A stretch of 64,000 nt of DNA from Oopsacas minuta (GCA_024704765.1 JAKMXF010000199.1:186001-250000), one strand, 5' to 3'; shown: positions 28,124 to 48,436, counted from the first letter of the stretch. Notes: generated by a model not told the origin, from the sequence alone. Numbers and translations: made by a program.

Positions 28124-29999
28124 TTATGAAATTAGGATTTCTTTGATGATGCTAAATAGACTATCAGAGATCATCATATGATCACAATCAACCTCCAAAC
28201 TAACAAGGTTATCTGACTGAATAATAATAGAAACCAATACTAAAGATTTTTTGGAAGCAGTTATTCCAGCATACAATTTAGTATGTTGATTTGAAGTTGG
28301 TATCGGATTCAGATTACATCCTTCTAAGATCTGGTGATCAATAGAATTACTGCATTGGTTCATGCAAATATCACCTTTAGTTACGCTCATTCCTCCAAAT
28401 CTCTTTTGGTATTTTAGGAATGACATTTCAGGGAAATACACAGGCAGCATAAGTTCTCCACAAGTTGGGTGGATATAAATAGAATTATTAATATTAGCAT
28501 CCAATGATCGTACGAATAACTTCGCGGGCTGAATGGAATCATTAAAGTCGATACCAACTGAATAATAAACTTTCGATAGAGGAAAAATCTTTCCGAATTC
28601 GTTTCCCTTTTGCAAATTTGTACCTGAAGCTGGATCTATTGAAAGATCAGAAAAGATAGTTCCAGCTTCATGATTTTCAATCAGTAATTCAACTTCGATC
28701 ATCCTAGGAGTATTGATATTGAATCGACGTCTAAGCATACGATATTTGATTGAAATTCCATTACCATTGTATTTATTCATCACCTCATTATAATTAGTGG
28801 TCACAAATTTTGGTAAAATTGGTTCTAGTTCATCAATAAGATTCTTTGTAGGTGTCAATAAGGTGTCATTGCACATAGGTTCAAGAATATTCGCATTAAC
28901 ATCTTCTTCGGTAAATTCGTCAATCAAAAGACATTTACTCTGTGGGTTATTTACATTTGACGATAATGGTTCAATTGGCTGGTTACTATCTGAAGTATCT
29001 GAAGTATCTGAACCGGAAGTATTGTCCGTCTCACTATGGAGTTCATTCTTATGAATAGGAACAGACTCTTCGAATTCCCTATGGCCAGATAATTCCGAAA
29101 GAGAAGAAGCAGAACTGTGAGTTGAAATGTCTGAATCGTAAGATTCATCTGTATCCGTGATTGATTCTGAATCTGTTGCAGAACTTGATTCACCATGACT
29201 CGAATAAAATGTATTTAAGTCTTTAGTTCGAATATATCCAACAGGCTTTTGAATGAAAGTATTATCGGATTCTACGAATACATCTCGAACAGTAGACTTT
29301 GGTGCTTTGTGAGGAAAGTCAGGCAAAAGCTTATAGCCAACAACTTTGATATTTAGGAAATGTGATAATGAGCCTAATTGCCATTGTTCTCGATCTTTAT
29401 AAGGTGAACGTAATTGAGGGGCAGGCTTATGTGATATTATTAGTTTCTTAGAATACTTATGAATTATATTGTCTCCTGGAGGGAACAAAATATTTCTAAG
29501 CAATCTAGATTTATCTCTTATGTCATAACTTTGATCAAATCGACCTAATGAAAATACATACTGGCACAAAACACGTGTCTGCTTAGAATTAAGACAAACA
29601 AGTTTTGCAGCAAGATTTAAGGTTTGATGTTTCACAGGATCAGTTTCATATAAAAACATCTTAGCTGCTTTTCGAAGAACATCTGGAGCGATTAAGGGGA
29701 TTCGATGACAATGCTCACCAATGATCCAAATAATACTAGCTCTGGCATTACTATTTTCAGTCTTGTCCAGCATCTTTGATAGACGGATAATAACATCTTC
29801 ATTCTGACCAGGTCCTAAATGAAGTAGTCTCTGAATTACAATTACACTTTCACCAGCAATATCAAGATCTGTGCAGGATAATAGCCCGAGCAGACCAGAT
29901 AAGCATATATCGGATATCTCAGGAACTCGGCTAGCAATGCGTCCTATCGCATGAATTGCTGCAGAAACAAAGAGAAAATCATCATTATAGATGTAGACA
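28124..29999 (-). CDS. AP3B1: AP-3 complex subunit beta, exon 3 of 3 (end of trunk, acidic hinge, ear domain, stop)
   Basis: Acceptor ttttAG at 30001-30000. Reads (S)VYIYNDDFLFVSAAIHAIGRIA... in frame into ORF 28124-29773 (ARASIIWIIGEHC, DVLRKAAKMF, FDQSYDIRDKSR). AP3B1/AP3B2 co-orthologue. Confidence 0.93.
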
Positions 30000-34644: not shown

Positions 34645-36800
34645 CACAGGGTTACATAAATATATGTTTTCAGTACACAATCTAAGTTATCCAATTTTTC
34701 TAATACAACTTTTCGTGCTGAGTTTGAAAAACGCATCCATTTATGCCATCACGTCAGGATTTTATAGTATAGAACAAGACTTGTTTTTGAATAGTACATT
34801 TTGACATTAATATAAATGATCAAATAAAATGTTCCCAACCTCAAATTTTCATGTGTAAATATACTTAAAATAATACATTTCTTGTTCACCACACACTTCT
34901 ACATATGAAAGGACATATAGCATGTGTTATCCTATAAATTTTCTTAAGAACCTAGATTAGGACTCCAAGAACTTCCTTTAAACTCCCTTCTATGAGATTT
35001 TCTCGCGCAATGTATGTCCACACAATCTCGCTTCAGGCTCCAACAGTAGTCCGCTATCATTTTACTGTCATACCTTCCTTGGTAACGCTCTTCCAACGTT
35101 TGAATGTCCTGATGAAACTGTTCACCCTGCTCATCCGATACGTCTCCAAGGTTTGTTGGGAATTCATCCAAGTGGCTATGTAAAAATGAATTTTGATGCT
35201 CATATTACATCCGAACTTATGAAAGCTTTCGAGCAAACGATTGATTAAATTCACATAATTATAGTCTCTTCTATTTCCTAAGAAGCCTTTCACAAACGAT
35301 ACAAAGGCTTGCCATGCATCATACTCAGTATCCAACATATGAGCAGTGAATTCGGGATCTTTCATCAATTTTCGGATGTCTGGCCCATTGAAGATACCAG
35401 ATTTGACTTTTTCATCGCTCAGCCGGTGGAATCGTGAGCGAAGGTATTTAAAACAATCACCATCCTTGTTGAGAGTTCTTGCGAATTGCTTAATTAACCC
35501 GAGTTTAATATGCAAAGGTGGGAAAACAATCATTTTCCCGCCCACCAGTGCTTCGTTGATCACATTAGCACAACCAACAATTAAACTTTCTCTTTTTGGC
35601 CACTCCTTTCTGATCCAATGTTCATTCTTCGCTCTACTATCCCACATACACAAAAACAAGGATATTTTGTGTACCCACTTTGTTGCCCGAGAAGGAAGCA
35701 AACCATTTTTAGATCTACACAGATGATCCACTTGTGAGAATCGTATCTAATTAATTGCAAAACCAGATTGACATTTTCATATTTTTCATTTAATGTCACA
35801 GAATGAGCAAGGGGTATTGACCCAAACTGATTACCATTGTAAGTAAAACAACTTTTAAACTCCTTTTTGAGCTATCAATAAAAGTCTCCATTCATTAGCA
35901 TCATATGTTTTCAGACCAAGTTCTTTTAACAGGCCCTCAATGTCACAACAGTAAACACAATTTTCACGTTGAGCAAAATATCGTAAGAACTCCTGTTCTC
36001 TATGACGATAACATGAAATCTTGGGATTACCGACAATTCGCACCTAATTAGATTGGTCAATTGATTCCGAATATGATTTTTAGCATTGTATGATCATTTT
36101 TTGTTTTTATTCATGTACATAAAGTAAAGAAATTTCAAAAAGTTCGTATACATTTAACGGCTACAGAGGTAATCGAGTGTTCGAATAGCATATCGTGAAT
36201 ATTCGACTTAGAGAGTGACTTTCAAAACATACATAGGATACTTAGTAATACATAACACAAATTACCGGTTGATTAGGAATAACCTAGGCGCCCGAAAGGT
36301 GCCTATTGAGGACGCTTCGTGTCCGCAACCGCGTACCGCAAGGAAGAGTAGCTTACTTGTATATGTTGAATTTTTGAACTATACAAGTAGTAAAGTATGG
36401 ATTGACAATCTGTGATCAAAGAATTTATCCATACATTTGGAAAAATTATAAATAAAATCATTCCGGATTTATCATAATACAATTTGAAGCTGTTCTTCTA
36501 TGGAAAATCTTCCTTATATTTCCCCATATTGAGCTGCCCTAACTCAAAATTGCTACTTAAATTCCTTTAATAATACGGTGGACTCCGCTTAATAGAGTCA
36601 CCGGTTAATCTGGCCAACACCTTTATCCAGTAAATATAGGTGATAATTTAATCTCTGGATGGGTACTGTTTCGGTTAAGTAAACTAGCCATCCACTTGTA
36701 AATATTGGCCCTGCTGGGATAGATCGGAATGAGAGCTGTAACAGATATTTTGTTCATTTAACTTATAATCATGATGTTACGTAGGTCATGATTAAATGAA

Positions 36801-36852
36801 CTTCATATCACCCTATCCTTAGAAGTACTTCTAAAGATAGGGTGGTATGAAG
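36801..36852. repeat. 52-bp spacerless near-perfect palindrome
   Basis: cttcatatcaccctatccttagaagt|acttctaaagatagggtggtatgaag; 24/26 bases pair. Confidence 0.9.
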
Positions 36853-37258
36853 TGTTAGTTATACCCCCACACAATTATCCTACAAAATGGGGACATGAGA
36901 ATATTTGCCAGTAGGACATCCAATTCAGGCACTAAGAGTTACGCAAAGTTTGAACCACCCCGTTCGTGCCAGGAAATTAACCCTTTAGGTTTCTATTCGA
37001 TAAGAAGTCAGATAAATCAAGTCAAGTCATAAATAAACTATATTTACTGTCTAATATGCATGTGTCTACAAAATACTGAATAAATAATATAGATAAGAGA
37101 GTCGTGTTGTAAATAATGTTGTAGGAGAAAGATCAAGAGAAGTGTAGCTACCACATTATAACCATTGTTCTTCTTCCATGGTAGCTGCACCTCAATGGAG
37201 AGGATAGAGGAGAGGAGTGGAGTGAGAAGAGAAAGAGATGTGGCGGATTGGCTGTGTA

Positions 37259-38541
37259 AGCAAAGAGGGGTCTGCAAAGCTAGAGTTCATTTTGAAGGGA
37301 TGGTGATAGTCAAGCGCACGAATGAGCACTCCCATGGGCCTGACGAGCAGGCAGCGGGCTGTTGTGAAGCGAAAGCAGGCATGAAGAGGAAAGCACGGAA
37401 GTCCCAGGATAGCACACACCACATAGTGGGCGAGAGTTTGCCAACAGCATCAGAGGGTACTGCTGCTAAACTCCCCAAACTGGACAGCCTGAAGCGGACG
37501 ATACAACGCCAACGTGCTAGTGTACTTGCAGCTCCAGCACAGCCTACCACTCTAGTAGAGCTAGCTCTACCAGCAGTCTACCAGCAGACAGCCAAGGGAG
37601 AACAGTTCTTACTCTACGACTATGGTACAGACGATGTACACAGATTCCTCATCTTCGCGACACAACACAACCTCGGGATGCTGCAGCGAAGCAAGATCTG
37701 GCTAGTTGATGGCACCTTCAAGACGGCACCTCCCCTCTTCGCCCAGGTGCATGTGGTGCATGGACTCCGTGGAGGAGATGATCCTATGAAGACCGGTCAT
37801 CTGTTACCGAGCCTGTTCGTGCTACTGCCCAGCAAGACGGAGGCTGCCTACCTGAGGATGTGGGAACAGATCCGCCTACTGTGTCCACTTGCCCAGCCTC
37901 AACAGATGCTCCTGGACTTTGAGAAGGGCGCGATTACCAGCTTTGAGCATGTCTGGCCTAATACAGTAATGAAGTGCTGCTTCTTCCACCTTACACAGAA
38001 TATCTGGCGGCATGTGCAGTCTGCCTACACACATGACGAAGAGTTGGCTATGCGCATCCGGAGGATACCAGCCCTTGCTTTTGCCCGACCGGCAGACGTA
38101 CCCGATCTGTTTGATCAAGTGGCAAGGGACCTCCCCTTTACGCCTGAGATTGGCGAACTAGTCGACTACTTTGAGAGGACGTATGTCGGCCGCACAGTTG
38201 CCAGCGGATATCATGTAGCGGCGACGTACCCTATTCACCTGTAGAACAACCACATCGTACAACCAACGCCCGTAGAGGCATGGCACCGCAGCTTCAATGC
38301 CACTGTCGGCTGCCATCACCCTACCATATGGAAGTTTATCCTCTCCCTCAAGCGTGAGCAGGGCCTAGTGGAGGGACGGCATACTAACTACCTTGTTGGC
38401 AAGCCACCAACCAAGCGGAGGCGGTCCTAACAGAGTGAGGAAGCGTTGAAGACTCTAGTTCGTGAATATTATTCTCCAGATCGTTCTAAAATGGAGTTCT
38501 TGCAGGGTGTAGCACATCATTTCAGTCTGGGAACCGATTAA
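37259..38541 (+). pseudogene. Inverted duplicate of the MULE transposase, 5'-truncated
   Basis: Translation identical to the minus-strand copy from QRGVCKARVHF onward; same in-frame stops (TAG 38242-38244, TAA 38428-38430); natural end ...EFLQGVAHHFSLGTD* at 38541. Confidence 0.92.
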
Positions 38542-39891
38542 CATGTTAATCTAAAGGATTATCTCTAATCAATGTATTGAGGGCTAGATAATCCTTTAGA
38601 TTAACATGTTAATCGGTTCCCAGACTGAAATGATGTGCTACACCCTGCAAGAACTCCATTTTAGAACGATCTGGAGAATAATATTCACGAACTAGAGTCT
38701 TCAACGCTTCCTCACTCTGTTAGGACCGCCTCCGCTTGGTTGGTGGCTTGCCAACAAGGTAGTTAGTATGCCGTCCCTCCACTAGGCCCTGCTCACGCTT
38801 GAGGGAGAGGATAAACTTCCATATGGTAGGGTGATGGCAGCCGACAGTGGCATTGAAGCTGCGGTGCCATGCCTCTACGGGCGTTGGTTGTACGATGTGG
38901 TTGTTCTACAGGTGAATAGGGTACGTCGCCGCTACATGATATCCGCTGGCAACTGTGCGGCCGACATACGTCCTCTCAAAGTAGTCGACTAGTTCGCCAA
39001 TCTCAGGCGTAAAGGGGAGGTCCCTTGCCACTTGATCAAACAGATCGGGTACGTCTGCCGGTCGGGCAAAAGCAAGGGCTGGTATCCTCCGGATGCGCAT
39101 AGCCAACTCTTCGTCATGTGTGTAGGCAGACTGCACATGCCGCCAGATATTCTGTGTAAGGTGGAAGAAGCAGCACTTCATTACTGTATTAGGCCAGACA
39201 TGCTCAAAGCTGGTAATCGCGCCCTTCTCAAAGTCCAGGAGCATCTGTTGAGGCTGGGCAAGTGGACACAGTAGGCGGATCTGTTCCCACATCCTCAGGT
39301 AGGCAGCCTCCGTCTTGCTGGGCAGTAGCACGAACAGGCTCGGTAACAGATGACCGGTCTTCATAGGATCATCTCCTCCACGGAGTCCATGCACCACATG
39401 CACCTGGGCGAAGAGGGGAGGTGCCGTCTTGAAGGTGCCATCAACTAGCCAGATCTTGCTTCGCTGCAGCATCCCGAGGTTGTGTTGTGTCGCGAAGATG
39501 AGGAATCTGTGTACATCGTCTGTACCATAGTCGTAGAGTAAGAACTGTTCTCCCTTGGCTGTCTGCTGGTAGACTGCTGGTAGAGCTAGCTCTACTAGAG
39601 TGGTAGGCTGTGCTGGAGCTGCAAGTACACTAGCACGTTGGCGTTGTATCGTCCGCTTCAGGCTGTCCAGTTTGGGGAGTTTAGCAGCAGTACCCTCTGA
39701 TGCTGTTGGCAAACTCTCGCCCACTATGTGGTGTGTGCTATCCTGGGACTTCCGTGCTTTCCTCTTCATGCCTGCTTTCGCTTCACAACAGCCCGCTGCC
39801 TGCTCGTCAGGCCCATGGGAGTGCTCATTCGTGCGCTTGACTATCACCATCCCTTCAAAATGAACTCTAGCTTTGCAGACCCCTCTTTGCT
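37259..39891. repeat. Giant inverted repeat: two 1306-bp arms, 21-bp spacer
   Basis: All mirrored ORF coordinates sum to 77150 (no indels); main and shadow ORFs translate identically; arms 37259-38564 and 38586-39891. Confidence 0.97.
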
Positions 39892-40018
39892 CACACAACC
39901 AATGCGTCACATCCCCAACTCTCCTCTGCACACCAAATAAATATCCATTCTCCGACAGCTTACCTCCTCCTCTTTGTGACTTGATCAGCCTAAAGGTCGG
40001 CTGATCAAGAGGTTCCAC
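38609..40018 (-). pseudogene. FLYWCH-MULE transposase (parental copy); GTG at the start position, two premature stops
   Basis: FLYWCH (SQRGGGKLSENGYLF...HWLCEQRGVCKARV...HSH), LVDGTFK, LLDFEKG, CFFHLTQNIWR, DYFERTY, PVEAWHRSFN. Confidence 0.92.
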
Positions 40019-42144
40019 TATTAAGGATTATTAAATTTCAAAGACAATGTAATAAGTAATATTGTGAAAACGAATCTGAGTTTGAACTAGATCATTTTCT
40101 ATTTATGTCCGAGGATTGCAAATATCACAGGTGATTACACCCTGTTTACTACATTCTTCTTTACCAAGTATAGCCCAAGAGTATTTACTTCGTGTGTGTT
40201 TACTTAATACTTACTATAGCAATCTTTGGAATTCATATCATTAAAGTGATTCATGGAATCATGTCACTAAAATTAGAATTATCTATCCAATTAAGACCTT
40301 CCGTGGCAGATATAATTATTAGATAATTGATTATTTATGTGTACTTAGATTAAATTAATTAACTAATATCATATCAAATTGACCAATCAAATTAGGTGCG
40401 AATTGTCGTGGTGCGAATTATCGGTATCCGGAAATCTTGGTGTGTGGACCCAGCAAATTCTTTTGGTTAAGCCTAGATGCTAGTAGTTCGGAAGCAGCCT
40501 TTGACAAGCAAGATCACGAACCAAGTCATTTAACTCTTCCTGGTTGAATGTTTACAGTGGTTTAGATTTGATAAATTCTTCATCTCCACTCTCATCAGGT
40601 GACTCCACATCATCAATATTTTCTGGTTCTGGATCAGGTAAAAATTGATAGCAACCAGTTATTACAGGTTCAAGTTCAAGATTTTTCCAAATTGAAATCG
40701 GAATTTCATCACTATGTTGAACCGGCCTTATTGCGGAAGGTATAGAGGAATATTGTATTCTTGATTTGTTCTCCTGATTGAAACCTAGTGTTTTGACCAT
40801 ACAGAAGTAGCAATCATCATAATGGTTTGTCGGTCTTCTCCATATCATAGGAATTCCAAATGGCATTGACTTTAGTTTGTTACGTGACCAGTTATATAAA
40901 TTCATGAAGCATTTCTGACAAACTATATGTGGTGACCACTCTTTGTCTTGGCCGCCCAATTACATTCCAAAATACGCATGGTATAAATTGCGTACTGTAT
41001 CATCTATCGCCCGTTTCTGTGTCTGGAATGTTAACTCTCCACAAAATATAGCAGACACTATTCGGATCATTAGAAAATTTCCACCTTGAAGATGCCATAA
41101 AACAATTCGCTAAAATATAAATTAATGTTAATATCTTACCATATACTCTCTATATATAGTGACTATAAGCCTACTATATAGCATGCATAAGAATAACACT
41201 ATTCTATTAATATCTCAGCTAAAGTTAGGATTCCTTATACTATGAATGGAATTTATAAGATAAATGTGCCTTGACTCCGAATAAACAGAGTTTTGGAACG
41301 CCCAAATATCTAGTCATAGAAAACACAATAGCAAGGAATATAATGTGTGCTAGAAACACCGTTAAACAACAAATTATATAATTACAACTTGGGAATACTA
41401 GGCCTAGATGAAACTATGCACAAAAATTACGAAACATCAATATCAAAAAATCTGGACATGATGGGCACAAATGGATGGCGTTTTTGGCCTCAGAGGCCAA
41501 AAGTTAATTAGAAAAAATCAATGGGATAGTTTGTGTAAAAATGCTGTTGCCCAGTGTAATACATAATATCAAAGACAAAATACAAGACTACACGATGAAA
41601 TGCCGAATGTGGAAATATAATTGAGAGGCCATGATTTAAGTATCGTGAAAATTTAAATTAATGATATGAATAAATATAAGCAAAATATTGTAACTCAAAG
41701 AACCTCCCACTATATTTATGGATAAGCAGAAAAGTACAAAATTTCAGATAAAGAGATTATATTTCCAATAGCAAATAATAAATCTTTGGGCACCTCAGAG
41801 CATAGCAAAAAGATTTGAGTTTGAGATTTAGACATTTCTCAAAACTATTAACAATATATCTAAACCGAAAATCATCCAACACATTTTATGTTTAAATAAT
41901 GCATATTGATAAATGAGTTATTCAAGGTCTCTGGGATTATTCAGGAAAGTAAAACATCAACTTGGACAATATTTGTAATTGAGAAAACTTTAATAATTTA
42001 GTATTTCAGCATGGAAAATGCAATGCTGAAAAGGATGGGGAAAATGCACTGCTCCTGATACATAAAACCTGTGCATTACTTAGTCAACACTGCCCTCCCC
42101 CCCAAATCAAGAGTAAATATGACGCCATAATAAATAGAACTCAC

Positions 42145-43010
42145 CTAAATTCTCTTAATATCGAAGTAGAGTTTACTTGATTTGCTATATTTATTAGGAT
42201 GTCAAGTTTAATCATCTTAACATGTGTAGGCTCGTCTGTAGTGATATAAAATAATCTCAAAAAAGGTTCAAACAATCCTGGAGTATTTGCGGATATTGTT
42301 GCAATATTAGTCAAAACAATAGTACGAATCTCACGATGTGATTTAAGCAGTCTTGTTATAGGTCGGACTACCACTGCTAGTTCATTTTTAGGAGCTATGT
42401 GATAATATAATTGAACTACAGCTAATACGACAGACGAATTTCGGCTATGTAAAAGAGATTTAGCAGCACTTAGCAATAATCGATGATCAGGGTCCATGTT
42501 AACTGTAGGAGAAATAGATTGCTGCTCGTGCAAGACGAGTGAACCTTCAGAGCTAGATTCAGAACTGGAGTAAAAATGTTGATCACTGGGAGTAGTATCC
42601 AATCTGTTCGGGTCTAAAAATTGAGTACGGGCATAACGGGTGAGCATATTTAGTACAAAAACCTGGCCCCATTCATCAATATCAGGAAGAACGTTACATA
42701 GTTTGCGATAGTTTTGATGAATAAAAACAATTCTATCCGGACAAACTTGCTCGAAAGCAACTATTGCACCTCCAACTACCATAGTAAACTGATCTTTCAT
42801 AAGTTTTTCAATCACGTCAATTAACTGATCTTTTAGTGATGGATCAAGTGAGTGTAGTTTAGGGATAGAATGAGCAACTGTTTTCCGTACAAAGGGACTC
42901 ATGTCTTGAGCGGAGTCCTTGATGGCCAACATTACAATGGGGGCAATCATTGGGACCCTAATACTGGAAAGAACCCTAAGGGCACAGGAGCGAATAAGTT
43001 GATTAGAATC
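42145..43010 (-). CDS. AP3B1: AP-3 complex subunit beta, exon 2 of 3 (Adaptin_N repeats)
   Basis: Acceptor ttttAG at 43012-43011. DSNQLIRSCALRVLSSIRVPMIAPIVMLAIKD...SPFVRKTVAH...DEWGQV...ILREF; donor AG|GTGAGT at 42144 (phase 2, joins exon 3 in frame). Confidence 0.95.
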
Positions 43011-47081: not shown

Positions 47082-48436
47082 CAGTGCCGGTCAAAAAGAA
47101 TTGCTCAGAATAAATTTACCCCAATTTCTTATATCTATGACTGATTTTAACAATAATGCTTTATTATAATCAAGTAAATTGTTGTTAGTATTTAGTAAAA
47201 CCTCCTCTTGCTTGAAATACAGCTTTACATCTTTGCTGCATACTCTCAATTAGAGTATGGAGCCTGTTAATGTCGATGCTATCCCAAGTGCTTAATATGG
47301 CATTCCACAACTCTGAGTAGTTGGATGGGCTTTTCTCTTGAATTCTGAGGGAAATGTGATCCCAAAGATTCTCAATCGGATTTAGATCAGGTGACTGAGC
47401 AGGCCAATTCATAACTTCTATTTTTGCTCACCAACCATTGCTTAGACCCTTTGACCTATGGCATGGGGCGTTGTCTTAATGAAAGGTCCATCCAGAATGT
47501 TGAGAATGCAAATCAACGCTTGGGATTAGTGCATTTTCCAATATATCAATGTAGGAATTTGTCTTGAGGTTCCAAGATACTTTCCACAAGAGTCCTACGC
47601 CACTCCAGCAAAAGCATCCCCAAACCATGATGCCACCTCCACCAAACTTGCAAGTTTTTGAAGACCCCTTTCTGAGAACTCCTCCCTTTCATCCTCCTGA
47701 CGTAGGCTCTCCCGTCATTAGTATACAGAAGGAACCTAGATTCGTCACTGAACACAACTCTTGCCCATTCTTCAGTATTCCAATACTTGTTCGATCTTGT
47801 GAAGGAAAGTCGGTCTCTTTTGTGCTTGGTAGTAAGGCGGGGCTTCCTTCGCGGTTTTCGTCCGAACAGTCCAGCCCCTGGTAACCTTCTCTGAACAGTT
47901 GAAGTGGAAAGTTTTATCGAATATTCTGATAACACTTCAGCTTTGATCTGAGTAGCAATCTTAAATCGATCCTTTTTGCATTTTCTGACCAATAAATTGT
48001 CTTGCCTTTTGGTTGTGACACGAGGCCTACCCAGAATAGCGAGGTCTCTTACCGTGCCAGTCAGTCTGTGTTTCTTAAGCATCTCGGCTACACTTTTTTG
48101 GCTACACCCAACCATTTTAGCTACCTCCCTCTGAGTATGGCCACTTTCTGAAAGTAGTATTAGGTTGGCTCGATTTTCAATGGAAATTCGGGGTTTAGAA
48201 GGTGTTGAAAATTCGATAAAACAGATAAATTGGAAAAAAAAAAAGAATACAAAATAAAAACTGTAAGATGTGCAAATATAATGAGTGGATTAGCTGTGCA
48301 GTGTTGGTGTGTTACTTGTCAAAATACATATGGCTGAGTATGGTTTCGCAGAATTCAACTATCTGGTCAGTGTATACAATTTGACATTTACTATACTGCA
48401 TACATTCATCTTGAGCAATTCTTTTGACCGGCACTG
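47082..48436 (-). mobile_element. Tc1-like DNA transposon (1355 bp), disrupted DD34E transposase at about 48200-47185
   Basis: TIRs cagtgccggtcaaaa(a)gaattgctca, TA TSDs, motifs GRPRVTT, VVFSDESRF, *DNAPCH, WPAQSPDLNPIENLW. Confidence 0.93.

Follow-up and report, generated by a model that had tools for sequence, protein, structure and literature searches.

A complete 4.4-kb Mutator-like element (MULE), the interior of which is a palindrome formed by its own transposase gene, was found in the genome of the glass sponge Oopsacas minuta. It occupies positions 36025-40430 of a 64,000-nucleotide stretch (GCA_024704765.1, JAKMXF010000199.1:186001-250000), herein called the window, and is bounded by terminal inverted repeats (TIRs) and a target-site duplication (TSD). 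With a probability of about 0.7, it represents a dead, non-autonomous copy of a MULE family with a tail-to-tail duplicated transposase, the two arms of which are kept alike by conversion. On the evidence of the loci compared, the palindrome is an ancestral trait of the entire family that moves with the element, and not a one-off rearrangement. For this comparison, eight other O. minuta loci (L001-L004 and L007-L010) were fetched via annotated transposase relatives of the open reading frame (ORF) in the right arm. Public read data were represented by five runs kept as contigs, four of them from one sample, and these contigs indicate presence only.

Palindromic Transposase Gene Inside a Complete Element

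The palindrome consists of a left arm (L-type, 37259-38564, plus strand) and a right arm (R-type, 38586-39891, minus strand). In a gapless base-by-base mirror comparison, with paired coordinates summing to 77150, the arms were exact reverse complements over 1306 nt, with 0 mismatches and 0 indels. They are separated by a spacer of 21 nt (38565-38585), which forms the palindrome centre, is not self-complementary, and is the same in L001 and homologous in L002 and L004. The repeat finder gave arms of 1341 nt (37224-38564 and 38586-39926, 99%, 21 nt apart). The 35 nt outside the perfect part (37224-37258 vs. 39892-39926) are identical at 26 of 35 positions, and beyond this edge zone the likeness of the arms in the mirror comparison drops to the random level. 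On the left side, the zone is a diverged FLYWCH-like remnant on the plus strand, with the L-type ATG located upstream at 37195. The GC content of the arms is 0.53, as opposed to 0.36 in the AT-rich surroundings.

Both arms encode a transposase. The right-arm ORF (38906-40018, minus strand) contains FLYWCH (PF04500, residues 12-68) and MULE (PF10551) domains according to Pfam, whereas the left-arm ORF (37165-38244, plus strand) contains the MULE domain alone, with no Pfam match to FLYWCH. PF10551 was matched by both ORFs with an E-value of 3e-9, above the gathering score. The left arm runs from the middle of FLYWCH to 23 nt beyond the stop, and the right arm has the same transposase sequence, with its sense on the minus strand. 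The N-terminal FLYWCH coding part is present on the right side only (39892-40021, minus strand). Because the FLYWCH domain is found in the right-arm ORF and the left arm begins in the middle of it, it is the right arm, on the minus strand, that has the authentic 5' end of the gene. The start codon at this end is mutated, being ATA at 40019-40021, where the sister copy L001 has ATG at the aligned place.

The natural stop codon lies at 38539-38541 (mirrored at 38609-38611), 23 nt short of the spacer. Two nonsense codons precede it in each arm: TAG at 38242-38244 (mirrored at 38906-38908) and TAA at 38428-38430 (mirrored at 38720-38722). The region of the third catalytic residue is located downstream of the first of them. 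As read from its ORFs, the window copy produces no transposase. The occurrence of the two nonsense codons in each arm dates the homogenization of the arms after the death of the gene. At position 38722, all contigs carry the letter of the family majority and not the nonsense variant of the window copy; contigs drop rare variants. An earlier reading of this DNA, made from the sequence only, had described two tail-to-tail 1306-bp arms without indels around a 21-bp spacer, covering most of a FLYWCH-MULE transposase gene and homogenized after its death; the mirror comparison, the Pfam matches, and the mirrored nonsense codons bear out each of these points.

The left TIR (36025-36062, plus strand) is formed by the CGACAATTCGCACC motif and GATTGGTCAATT; this motif is common to the TIRs of L002 and of a single-gene relative described below. 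In the right TIR (40377-40430, minus strand), the terminal motif is present twice. The two TIRs share a 32-nt inverted pair (36031-36062 and 40377-40408), extended by the repeated terminal motif, and the TIR pattern has 2 occurrences in the window vs. 0 expected by chance. The TSD, GAAATCTTGG (10 letters), is located at 36015-36024 and, with the same 10 letters, at 40431-40440. A joint 36014->40431, with 10 letters fitting either side, was found in contigs from runs X1 and X3 and represents the empty-site sequence: GAAATCTTG(G), located on both sides of the element, is single in this contig. The ends of the element, 36025 and 40430, as well as the 9-10 bp length of the TSD, are thus fixed by the empty-site contig. 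Three features of the MULE superfamily, namely the MULE-type DDE domain, the TIRs, and the TSD of about 9 bp, were found in the window element.

A perfect mini-palindrome of 16 nt, GATTAACATGTTAATC, overlaps the natural stop in each arm (38536-38551 and 38599-38614), about 13 nt from the spacer. It could be the seed of the original fold-back or could have a role in 3'-end formation.

Distribution of the Palindrome in the Family

The best relatives of the right-arm ORF are O. minuta proteins, with identity of up to 92%. A tail-to-tail pair of transposase genes was found in all eight other loci. Seven of them have 2.7-kb palindromes, in which stretches of 1.0-1.25 kb show arm identity of 99.75-100%. 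In the eighth, L003, the centre of the palindrome has been lost together with a portion of one arm, which leaves a one-sided loop of 165 nt at L003:7393-7557; deletion of the centre is a classical route of palindrome stabilization. In each copy, the FLYWCH N-terminus precedes exactly one arm. The whole 4.4-kb unit, including both flanks, aligns at 90-95% over five copies (the window, L001, L007, L009, and L010), and separate 9-bp TSDs at different sites were found for L001, L007, L009, and L010. The alignment of the 4.4 kb over five loci, together with these separate TSDs, shows that the palindromic unit transposes as a whole.

An intact transposase ORF of 480 aa is present in L002. Between two palindromic subfamilies, the transposase dN/dS is 0.27-0.29 at a dS of 0.40. 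From this ratio and the open L002 gene, it follows that the family kept a working transposase and its mobility while palindromic. L-type ORFs with an in-frame ATG (MERIEER...) were also found; such an ORF reaches 438 aa in L007, and in the window copy it stays open as far as the first nonsense codon. The L-type ORF of L002 has 415 aa.

In the contigs from public reads of the species, the depth of the arms is 20-100 times that of unique flank. Joints corresponding to internal deletions were also found in these contigs (39275->40383, 36540->39105, and 36091->40067), one of them at high depth, which suggests short non-autonomous derivatives. Taken together, arm depth and internal-deletion joints indicate a family that is abundant and accompanied by shorter derivatives. 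Pieces 95-99% alike to the arms and to the left flank were also present in run X5 (organism B, sample S2), the label of which names a different organism; these pieces could come from the same species under another label, from a close relative, or from a transfer. In L001 (JAKMXF010000307.1), the left flank contains a pogo/Tc5-like element (CENP-B_N, HTH_Tnp_Tc5, and DDE_1; L001:13731-15742).

Three transposase relatives from other metagenome-type assemblies have a single gene each. One of them (L006:5681-7699, ENA ERZ25072740) is a compact 2.0-kb element with a 482-aa FLYWCH-MULE gene, a 9-bp TSD, and TIRs built of 15-nt CGACATTTCGTTACA repeats. This element shares with the Oopsacas family the transposase lineage (60% amino acid identity), the type of the 15-nt TIR motif, the GATTGGTCAATT subterminal box, and the 9-bp TSD, but differs by its length of 2.0 kb, its 196-nt TIRs, its one gene, and the lack of an internal palindrome. 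As judged from these comparisons, the palindrome is a derived feature, which apparently arose in the Oopsacas lineage and was successful there. In the literature searches made, no description of a mobile palindromic MULE family was found.

Concerted Evolution of the Arms

When the four arms of the window copy and L001 were aligned, the many substitutions as well as the indels of 15 nt and 22 nt by which the copies differ were found in both arms of each; the spacer and the outer edge are common to the two copies. A tree was built for 16 arms of eight copies, using the middle 1150 columns, 302 of them variable. The arms of each copy were nearest neighbours in this tree, with support of 0.999-1.0 where the arms differ. 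Within-copy arm identity is 0.995-1.000 in seven of the eight copies and 0.943 in the centre-deleted L003, as compared with 0.81-0.98 between copies. Among the 302 variable columns, fixed differences between R-type and L-type arms number 0.

Two zones behave in the opposite way. At the outer edge, the L-type and R-type versions are each conserved among copies and group by side, and in L002, L004, and L008, the arms have diverged over the last ~100 nt before the spacer, again grouping by side. Within-copy identity in these zones is 61-88% vs. 84-98% between copies on the same side. The centre-proximal ~100 nt show conversion in the window copy and almost complete conversion (92-100%) in L001, and the identical part extends about 12 nt further outward in L001 than in the window copy. 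Because diverged copies share the outer edge and the spacer, the layout arose once. The whole pattern has the signature of one old inverted duplication, the arms of which would have repeatedly overwritten each other with tract ends varying by copy. We infer arm-to-arm gene conversion as the mechanism; an identical pattern would result from self-templated repair synthesis during transposition.

The persistence of the palindrome may also be explained by selection acting on the element, the arrangement providing a self-limiting hairpin, a spare copy for conversion repair, or a convergent gene for a FLYWCH-less regulator transposase. The layout lasted through a divergence of dS 0.40 and in two subfamilies, single-gene relatives elsewhere make it derived yet successful, and open L-type ORFs with an in-frame ATG are available for such a regulator in the window copy (before its first nonsense codon) and, with 438 aa, in L007, together with the 415-aa L-type ORF of L002. 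However, the L-type start and the left flank are not conserved between the subfamilies, conversion propagates damage no less readily than repair, the window copy being an instance of damage, and persistence may also be due to hitch-hiking of a neutral structure with frequent homogenization. We judge such selection unlikely. Unlikely, too, is the related idea of the tail-to-tail duplication as a built-in copy-number brake, in which transcripts running past the centre, whether started at the promoter of the element or, as for the window copy, in a host gene, would form conversion-perfected 1.3-kb double-stranded RNA (dsRNA) and dead intronic copies would serve as constitutive sources of small interfering RNAs (siRNAs) in an early-branching animal.

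Flanks and Genomic Context

Between the left TIR and the palindrome, the left flank (L-flank, 36063-37223) consists of ~1.2 kb of AT-rich non-coding sequence (GC 0.355) without likeness to the right flank. It is kept at 90-95% in L001, L007, L009, and L010, without detectable conservation in subfamily 2. The right flank (R-flank, 40022-40376, minus strand) is the 5' untranslated, or promoter-side, region of the element and aligns with the R-flanks of the same four loci. When the 1.2-kb left flank was compared with the 0.5-kb right flank by gapped and word-7 comparison, the TIRs and the 35-nt edge zone were the sole matches. The flank comparison speaks neither for nor against an origin of the whole element as a decayed full dimer. 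A palindrome with overlapping arms of 31 nt lies within the left flank (36800-36853) and is kept in L009 and L010.

The element is located between Adaptin_N exons of the AP-3 beta gene. The upstream exon (42144-43010, minus strand) covers Adaptin_N profile positions 111-342, and the downstream one (28124-29773, minus strand) covers Adaptin_N 421-521, AP3B1_C, and AP3B1_C_2. An exon for Adaptin_N 342-421 was not found when the minus-strand ORFs between the two AP-3 beta exons were scanned with Pfam. Lying between minus-strand exons of this gene, the element is inside its transcribed span and has the host orientation, the intact-5' (R-type) arm and the host gene both being on the minus strand. 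Because this arm shares the orientation of the host gene, a read-through pre-mRNA would hold the sense and then the antisense copy. If the intron is transcribed, hairpin RNA would be a structurally inevitable product of such read-through. The sequence-only reading had placed the palindrome in intron 2 of AP-3 beta; the position between AP-3 beta exons holds, and the picture is modified by the nesting in another transposon and by the Adaptin_N 342-421 exon, which was not found.

Indeed, the MULE breaks the reading frame of another transposon, pieces of which were found at 40555-40959 and 35858-36043 on the minus strand. The interrupted transposon-like gene (34947-36014 and 40441-41150, minus strand) encodes peptides including ...MPFGIPMIWRRPTNHYDDCYFC... 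and ...EWRLLLIAQKG...; no Pfam family was matched by its pieces. Read depth suggests that this outer transposon is multi-copy. The empty-site joint was considered as a sign of a heterozygous recent insertion; this interpretation was downgraded, since other copies of the outer transposon would give the same contig. Another joint, 35698->40841, was considered as an AP-3 beta splice and rejected in favour of a variant form of the transposon around the MULE, as its ends are not GT..AG and its shorter side has only 28 letters. An ORF at 47546-48115 (minus strand) with a Tc3-type transposase helix-turn-helix domain (PF01498, E-value 4e-15) indicates a Tc1/mariner-like element located upstream of the AP-3 beta exon.

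The intronic position had also led to a proposal that the locus acts like maize Mu killer. Host transcription of a sense-orientation copy in an intron of this broadly expressed gene would give a hairpin, and siRNAs derived from it would silence the MULE family in trans, making the locus beneficial for the host. The geometry suits such a silencer: the host gene and the R-type arm are both on the minus strand, the complement is perfect over 1306 nt with a loop of 21 nt, as expected of a long hairpin, and the window copy yields no protein. Moreover, Mu killer itself, an inverted-duplicated derivative of MuDR, operates by a read-through hairpin (PMC3440606) and, like the window element, is an inverted duplication of a Mutator-superfamily transposase placed where a flanking promoter can read through (PMC3440606). 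However, Mu killer is one of a kind, a derivative produced by rearrangement, and the elements that it silences are otherwise normal (PMC3440606), whereas the palindrome is present in all nine Oopsacas copies examined, including copies with an intact ORF such as L002 (480 aa). Mu killer is a single immobile silencing locus made of the TIR plus the 5' part; the Oopsacas palindrome is the layout of a family that is mobile and multi-copy and has TIRs, TSDs, and a selected transposase of its own, and its tail-to-tail arms contain almost the entire gene. Purifying selection acted on the family as it diversified in the palindromic state, and its copy number is high, so any silencing derived from hairpins has not stopped it, and the dN/dS of 0.27-0.29 in this state argues against the hairpin as an effective killer of the family. 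Literature searches on Oopsacas brought up nothing about Dicer, Argonaute, or Piwi, and the genome paper mentions no Dicer or Argonaute (PMC10280926).

The proposal of a one-off, Mu-killer-like derivative therefore fails, since eight of the eight other loci share the palindrome, TSDs are separate, and the transposase has been under selection. Of the silencing proposal there remains a dead FLYWCH-MULE transposase, duplicated in inverted orientation within the part of AP-3 beta that is transcribed, and a dedicated host silencer at this locus is improbable.

Proposed Origin of the Window Element

The favoured explanation, a dead copy of a palindromic MULE family, would involve the following events. 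One old inverted duplication, of which the R-type arm has the full-FLYWCH 5' end and the L-type arm is cut in the middle of FLYWCH and joined to an unrelated 1.2-kb flank, moves with the element to new sites. Its arms would be kept alike by gene conversion recurring within the element, or by self-templated repair synthesis, in tracts that end at variable points. In the window copy, conversion would have spread the two nonsense mutations to both arms. This copy presumably landed in another transposon sitting in an AP-3 beta intron, in the orientation of the host gene. Any host transcript reading through the element would necessarily form a perfect hairpin of 1.3 kb as a by-product of the family layout, not as a locus-specific host device.

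Several points weigh against this explanation. The loci were sampled via annotated transposase matches, and single-arm O. minuta copies could have escaped. The empty-site contig may belong to a different copy of the outer transposon and not to an allele of this locus. The runs consisted of short contigs broken inside the repeat, and no long read crossing the two arms together with their flanks was seen among them. The O. minuta assembly is a SPAdes hybrid of Illumina and Canu-corrected PacBio reads, with SSPACE scaffolding and Pilon polishing (PMC10280926); a de Bruijn assembler combined with Pilon may render near-identical inverted arms identical, and the count of 0 mismatches in 1306 nt may be a little too favourable. 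Finally, the GC content at third codon positions (GC3) is 0.57-0.60 in the palindromic genes vs. 0.45, 0.47, and 0.62 in the three single-gene relatives, and neither GC nor GC3 gives a clear signature of biased gene conversion.

An assembly artefact, in which the palindrome or its perfection would stem from hybrid de Bruijn assembly, polishing, or chimeric long reads, is made conceivable by this pipeline of SPAdes with corrected PacBio reads, SSPACE, and Pilon (PMC10280926) and by the graph edges that inverted-repeat arms share, but is very improbable, given that nine loci differing by 2-19% share the outer edge, the spacer, and the L- and R-type flanks, that the arms of L002, L004, and L008 are 61-88% alike beside the spacer and were thus assembled as distinct sequence around a real centre, that isolated arm differences were kept in L001, L007, and L010, so that collapse is not automatic, and that the spacer is covered by contigs from reads.

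Comparison With Known Systems and Significance

The closest parallel for the behaviour of the arms is provided by sex-chromosome and ampliconic palindromes, which likewise have long inverted arms, a short spacer, arm identity of ~100% while copies diverge, and diverging unconverted edges. Arm-to-arm gene conversion in human and primate Y palindromes was reportedly described by Rozen et al. in 2003. Palindromes of the Y type are fixed, extend from 10 kb to Mb, and contain host genes; in contrast, the Oopsacas palindrome has 2.6 kb, is located inside a transposon, and has moved to new sites. Among DNA transposons, Galileo (P superfamily, Foldback-like) also has kb-scale inverted repeats that are more alike within than between elements. 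In Galileo these repeats are terminal, whereas the kb-scale repeat of Oopsacas is internal, tail to tail, coding, and located between two unrelated segments, with short TIRs separate from it. The Drosophila hairpin RNA (hpRNA) loci that give endogenous siRNAs share the long inverted repeats with the Oopsacas elements, and hpRNA hairpins can target related selfish genes. These are fixed host loci, while the Oopsacas palindromes are mobile elements, known here from DNA sequence.

The window element is probably one more dead, intronic member of a MULE family in which the palindrome formed by the transposase gene is internal and maintained by conversion. The window locus adds to this picture a nested, host-sense intronic setting and a case of conversion spreading nonsense mutations, along with single-gene outgroups and a test of selection. 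An inverted transposase repeat in a host intron resembles an analogue of Mu killer, and here this arrangement is the normal build of the element. If small RNAs from the arms were found, the family would be a transposon carrying its own RNA interference trigger in a sponge. If the family-level reading is true, O. minuta would offer a compact multi-copy natural system for palindrome biology, a single small genome containing 2.6-kb palindromes of graded age, dozens of them and independent of one another, each copy recording its conversion-tract ends, deletion of the centre (as in L003), and whether hairpin RNA forms.

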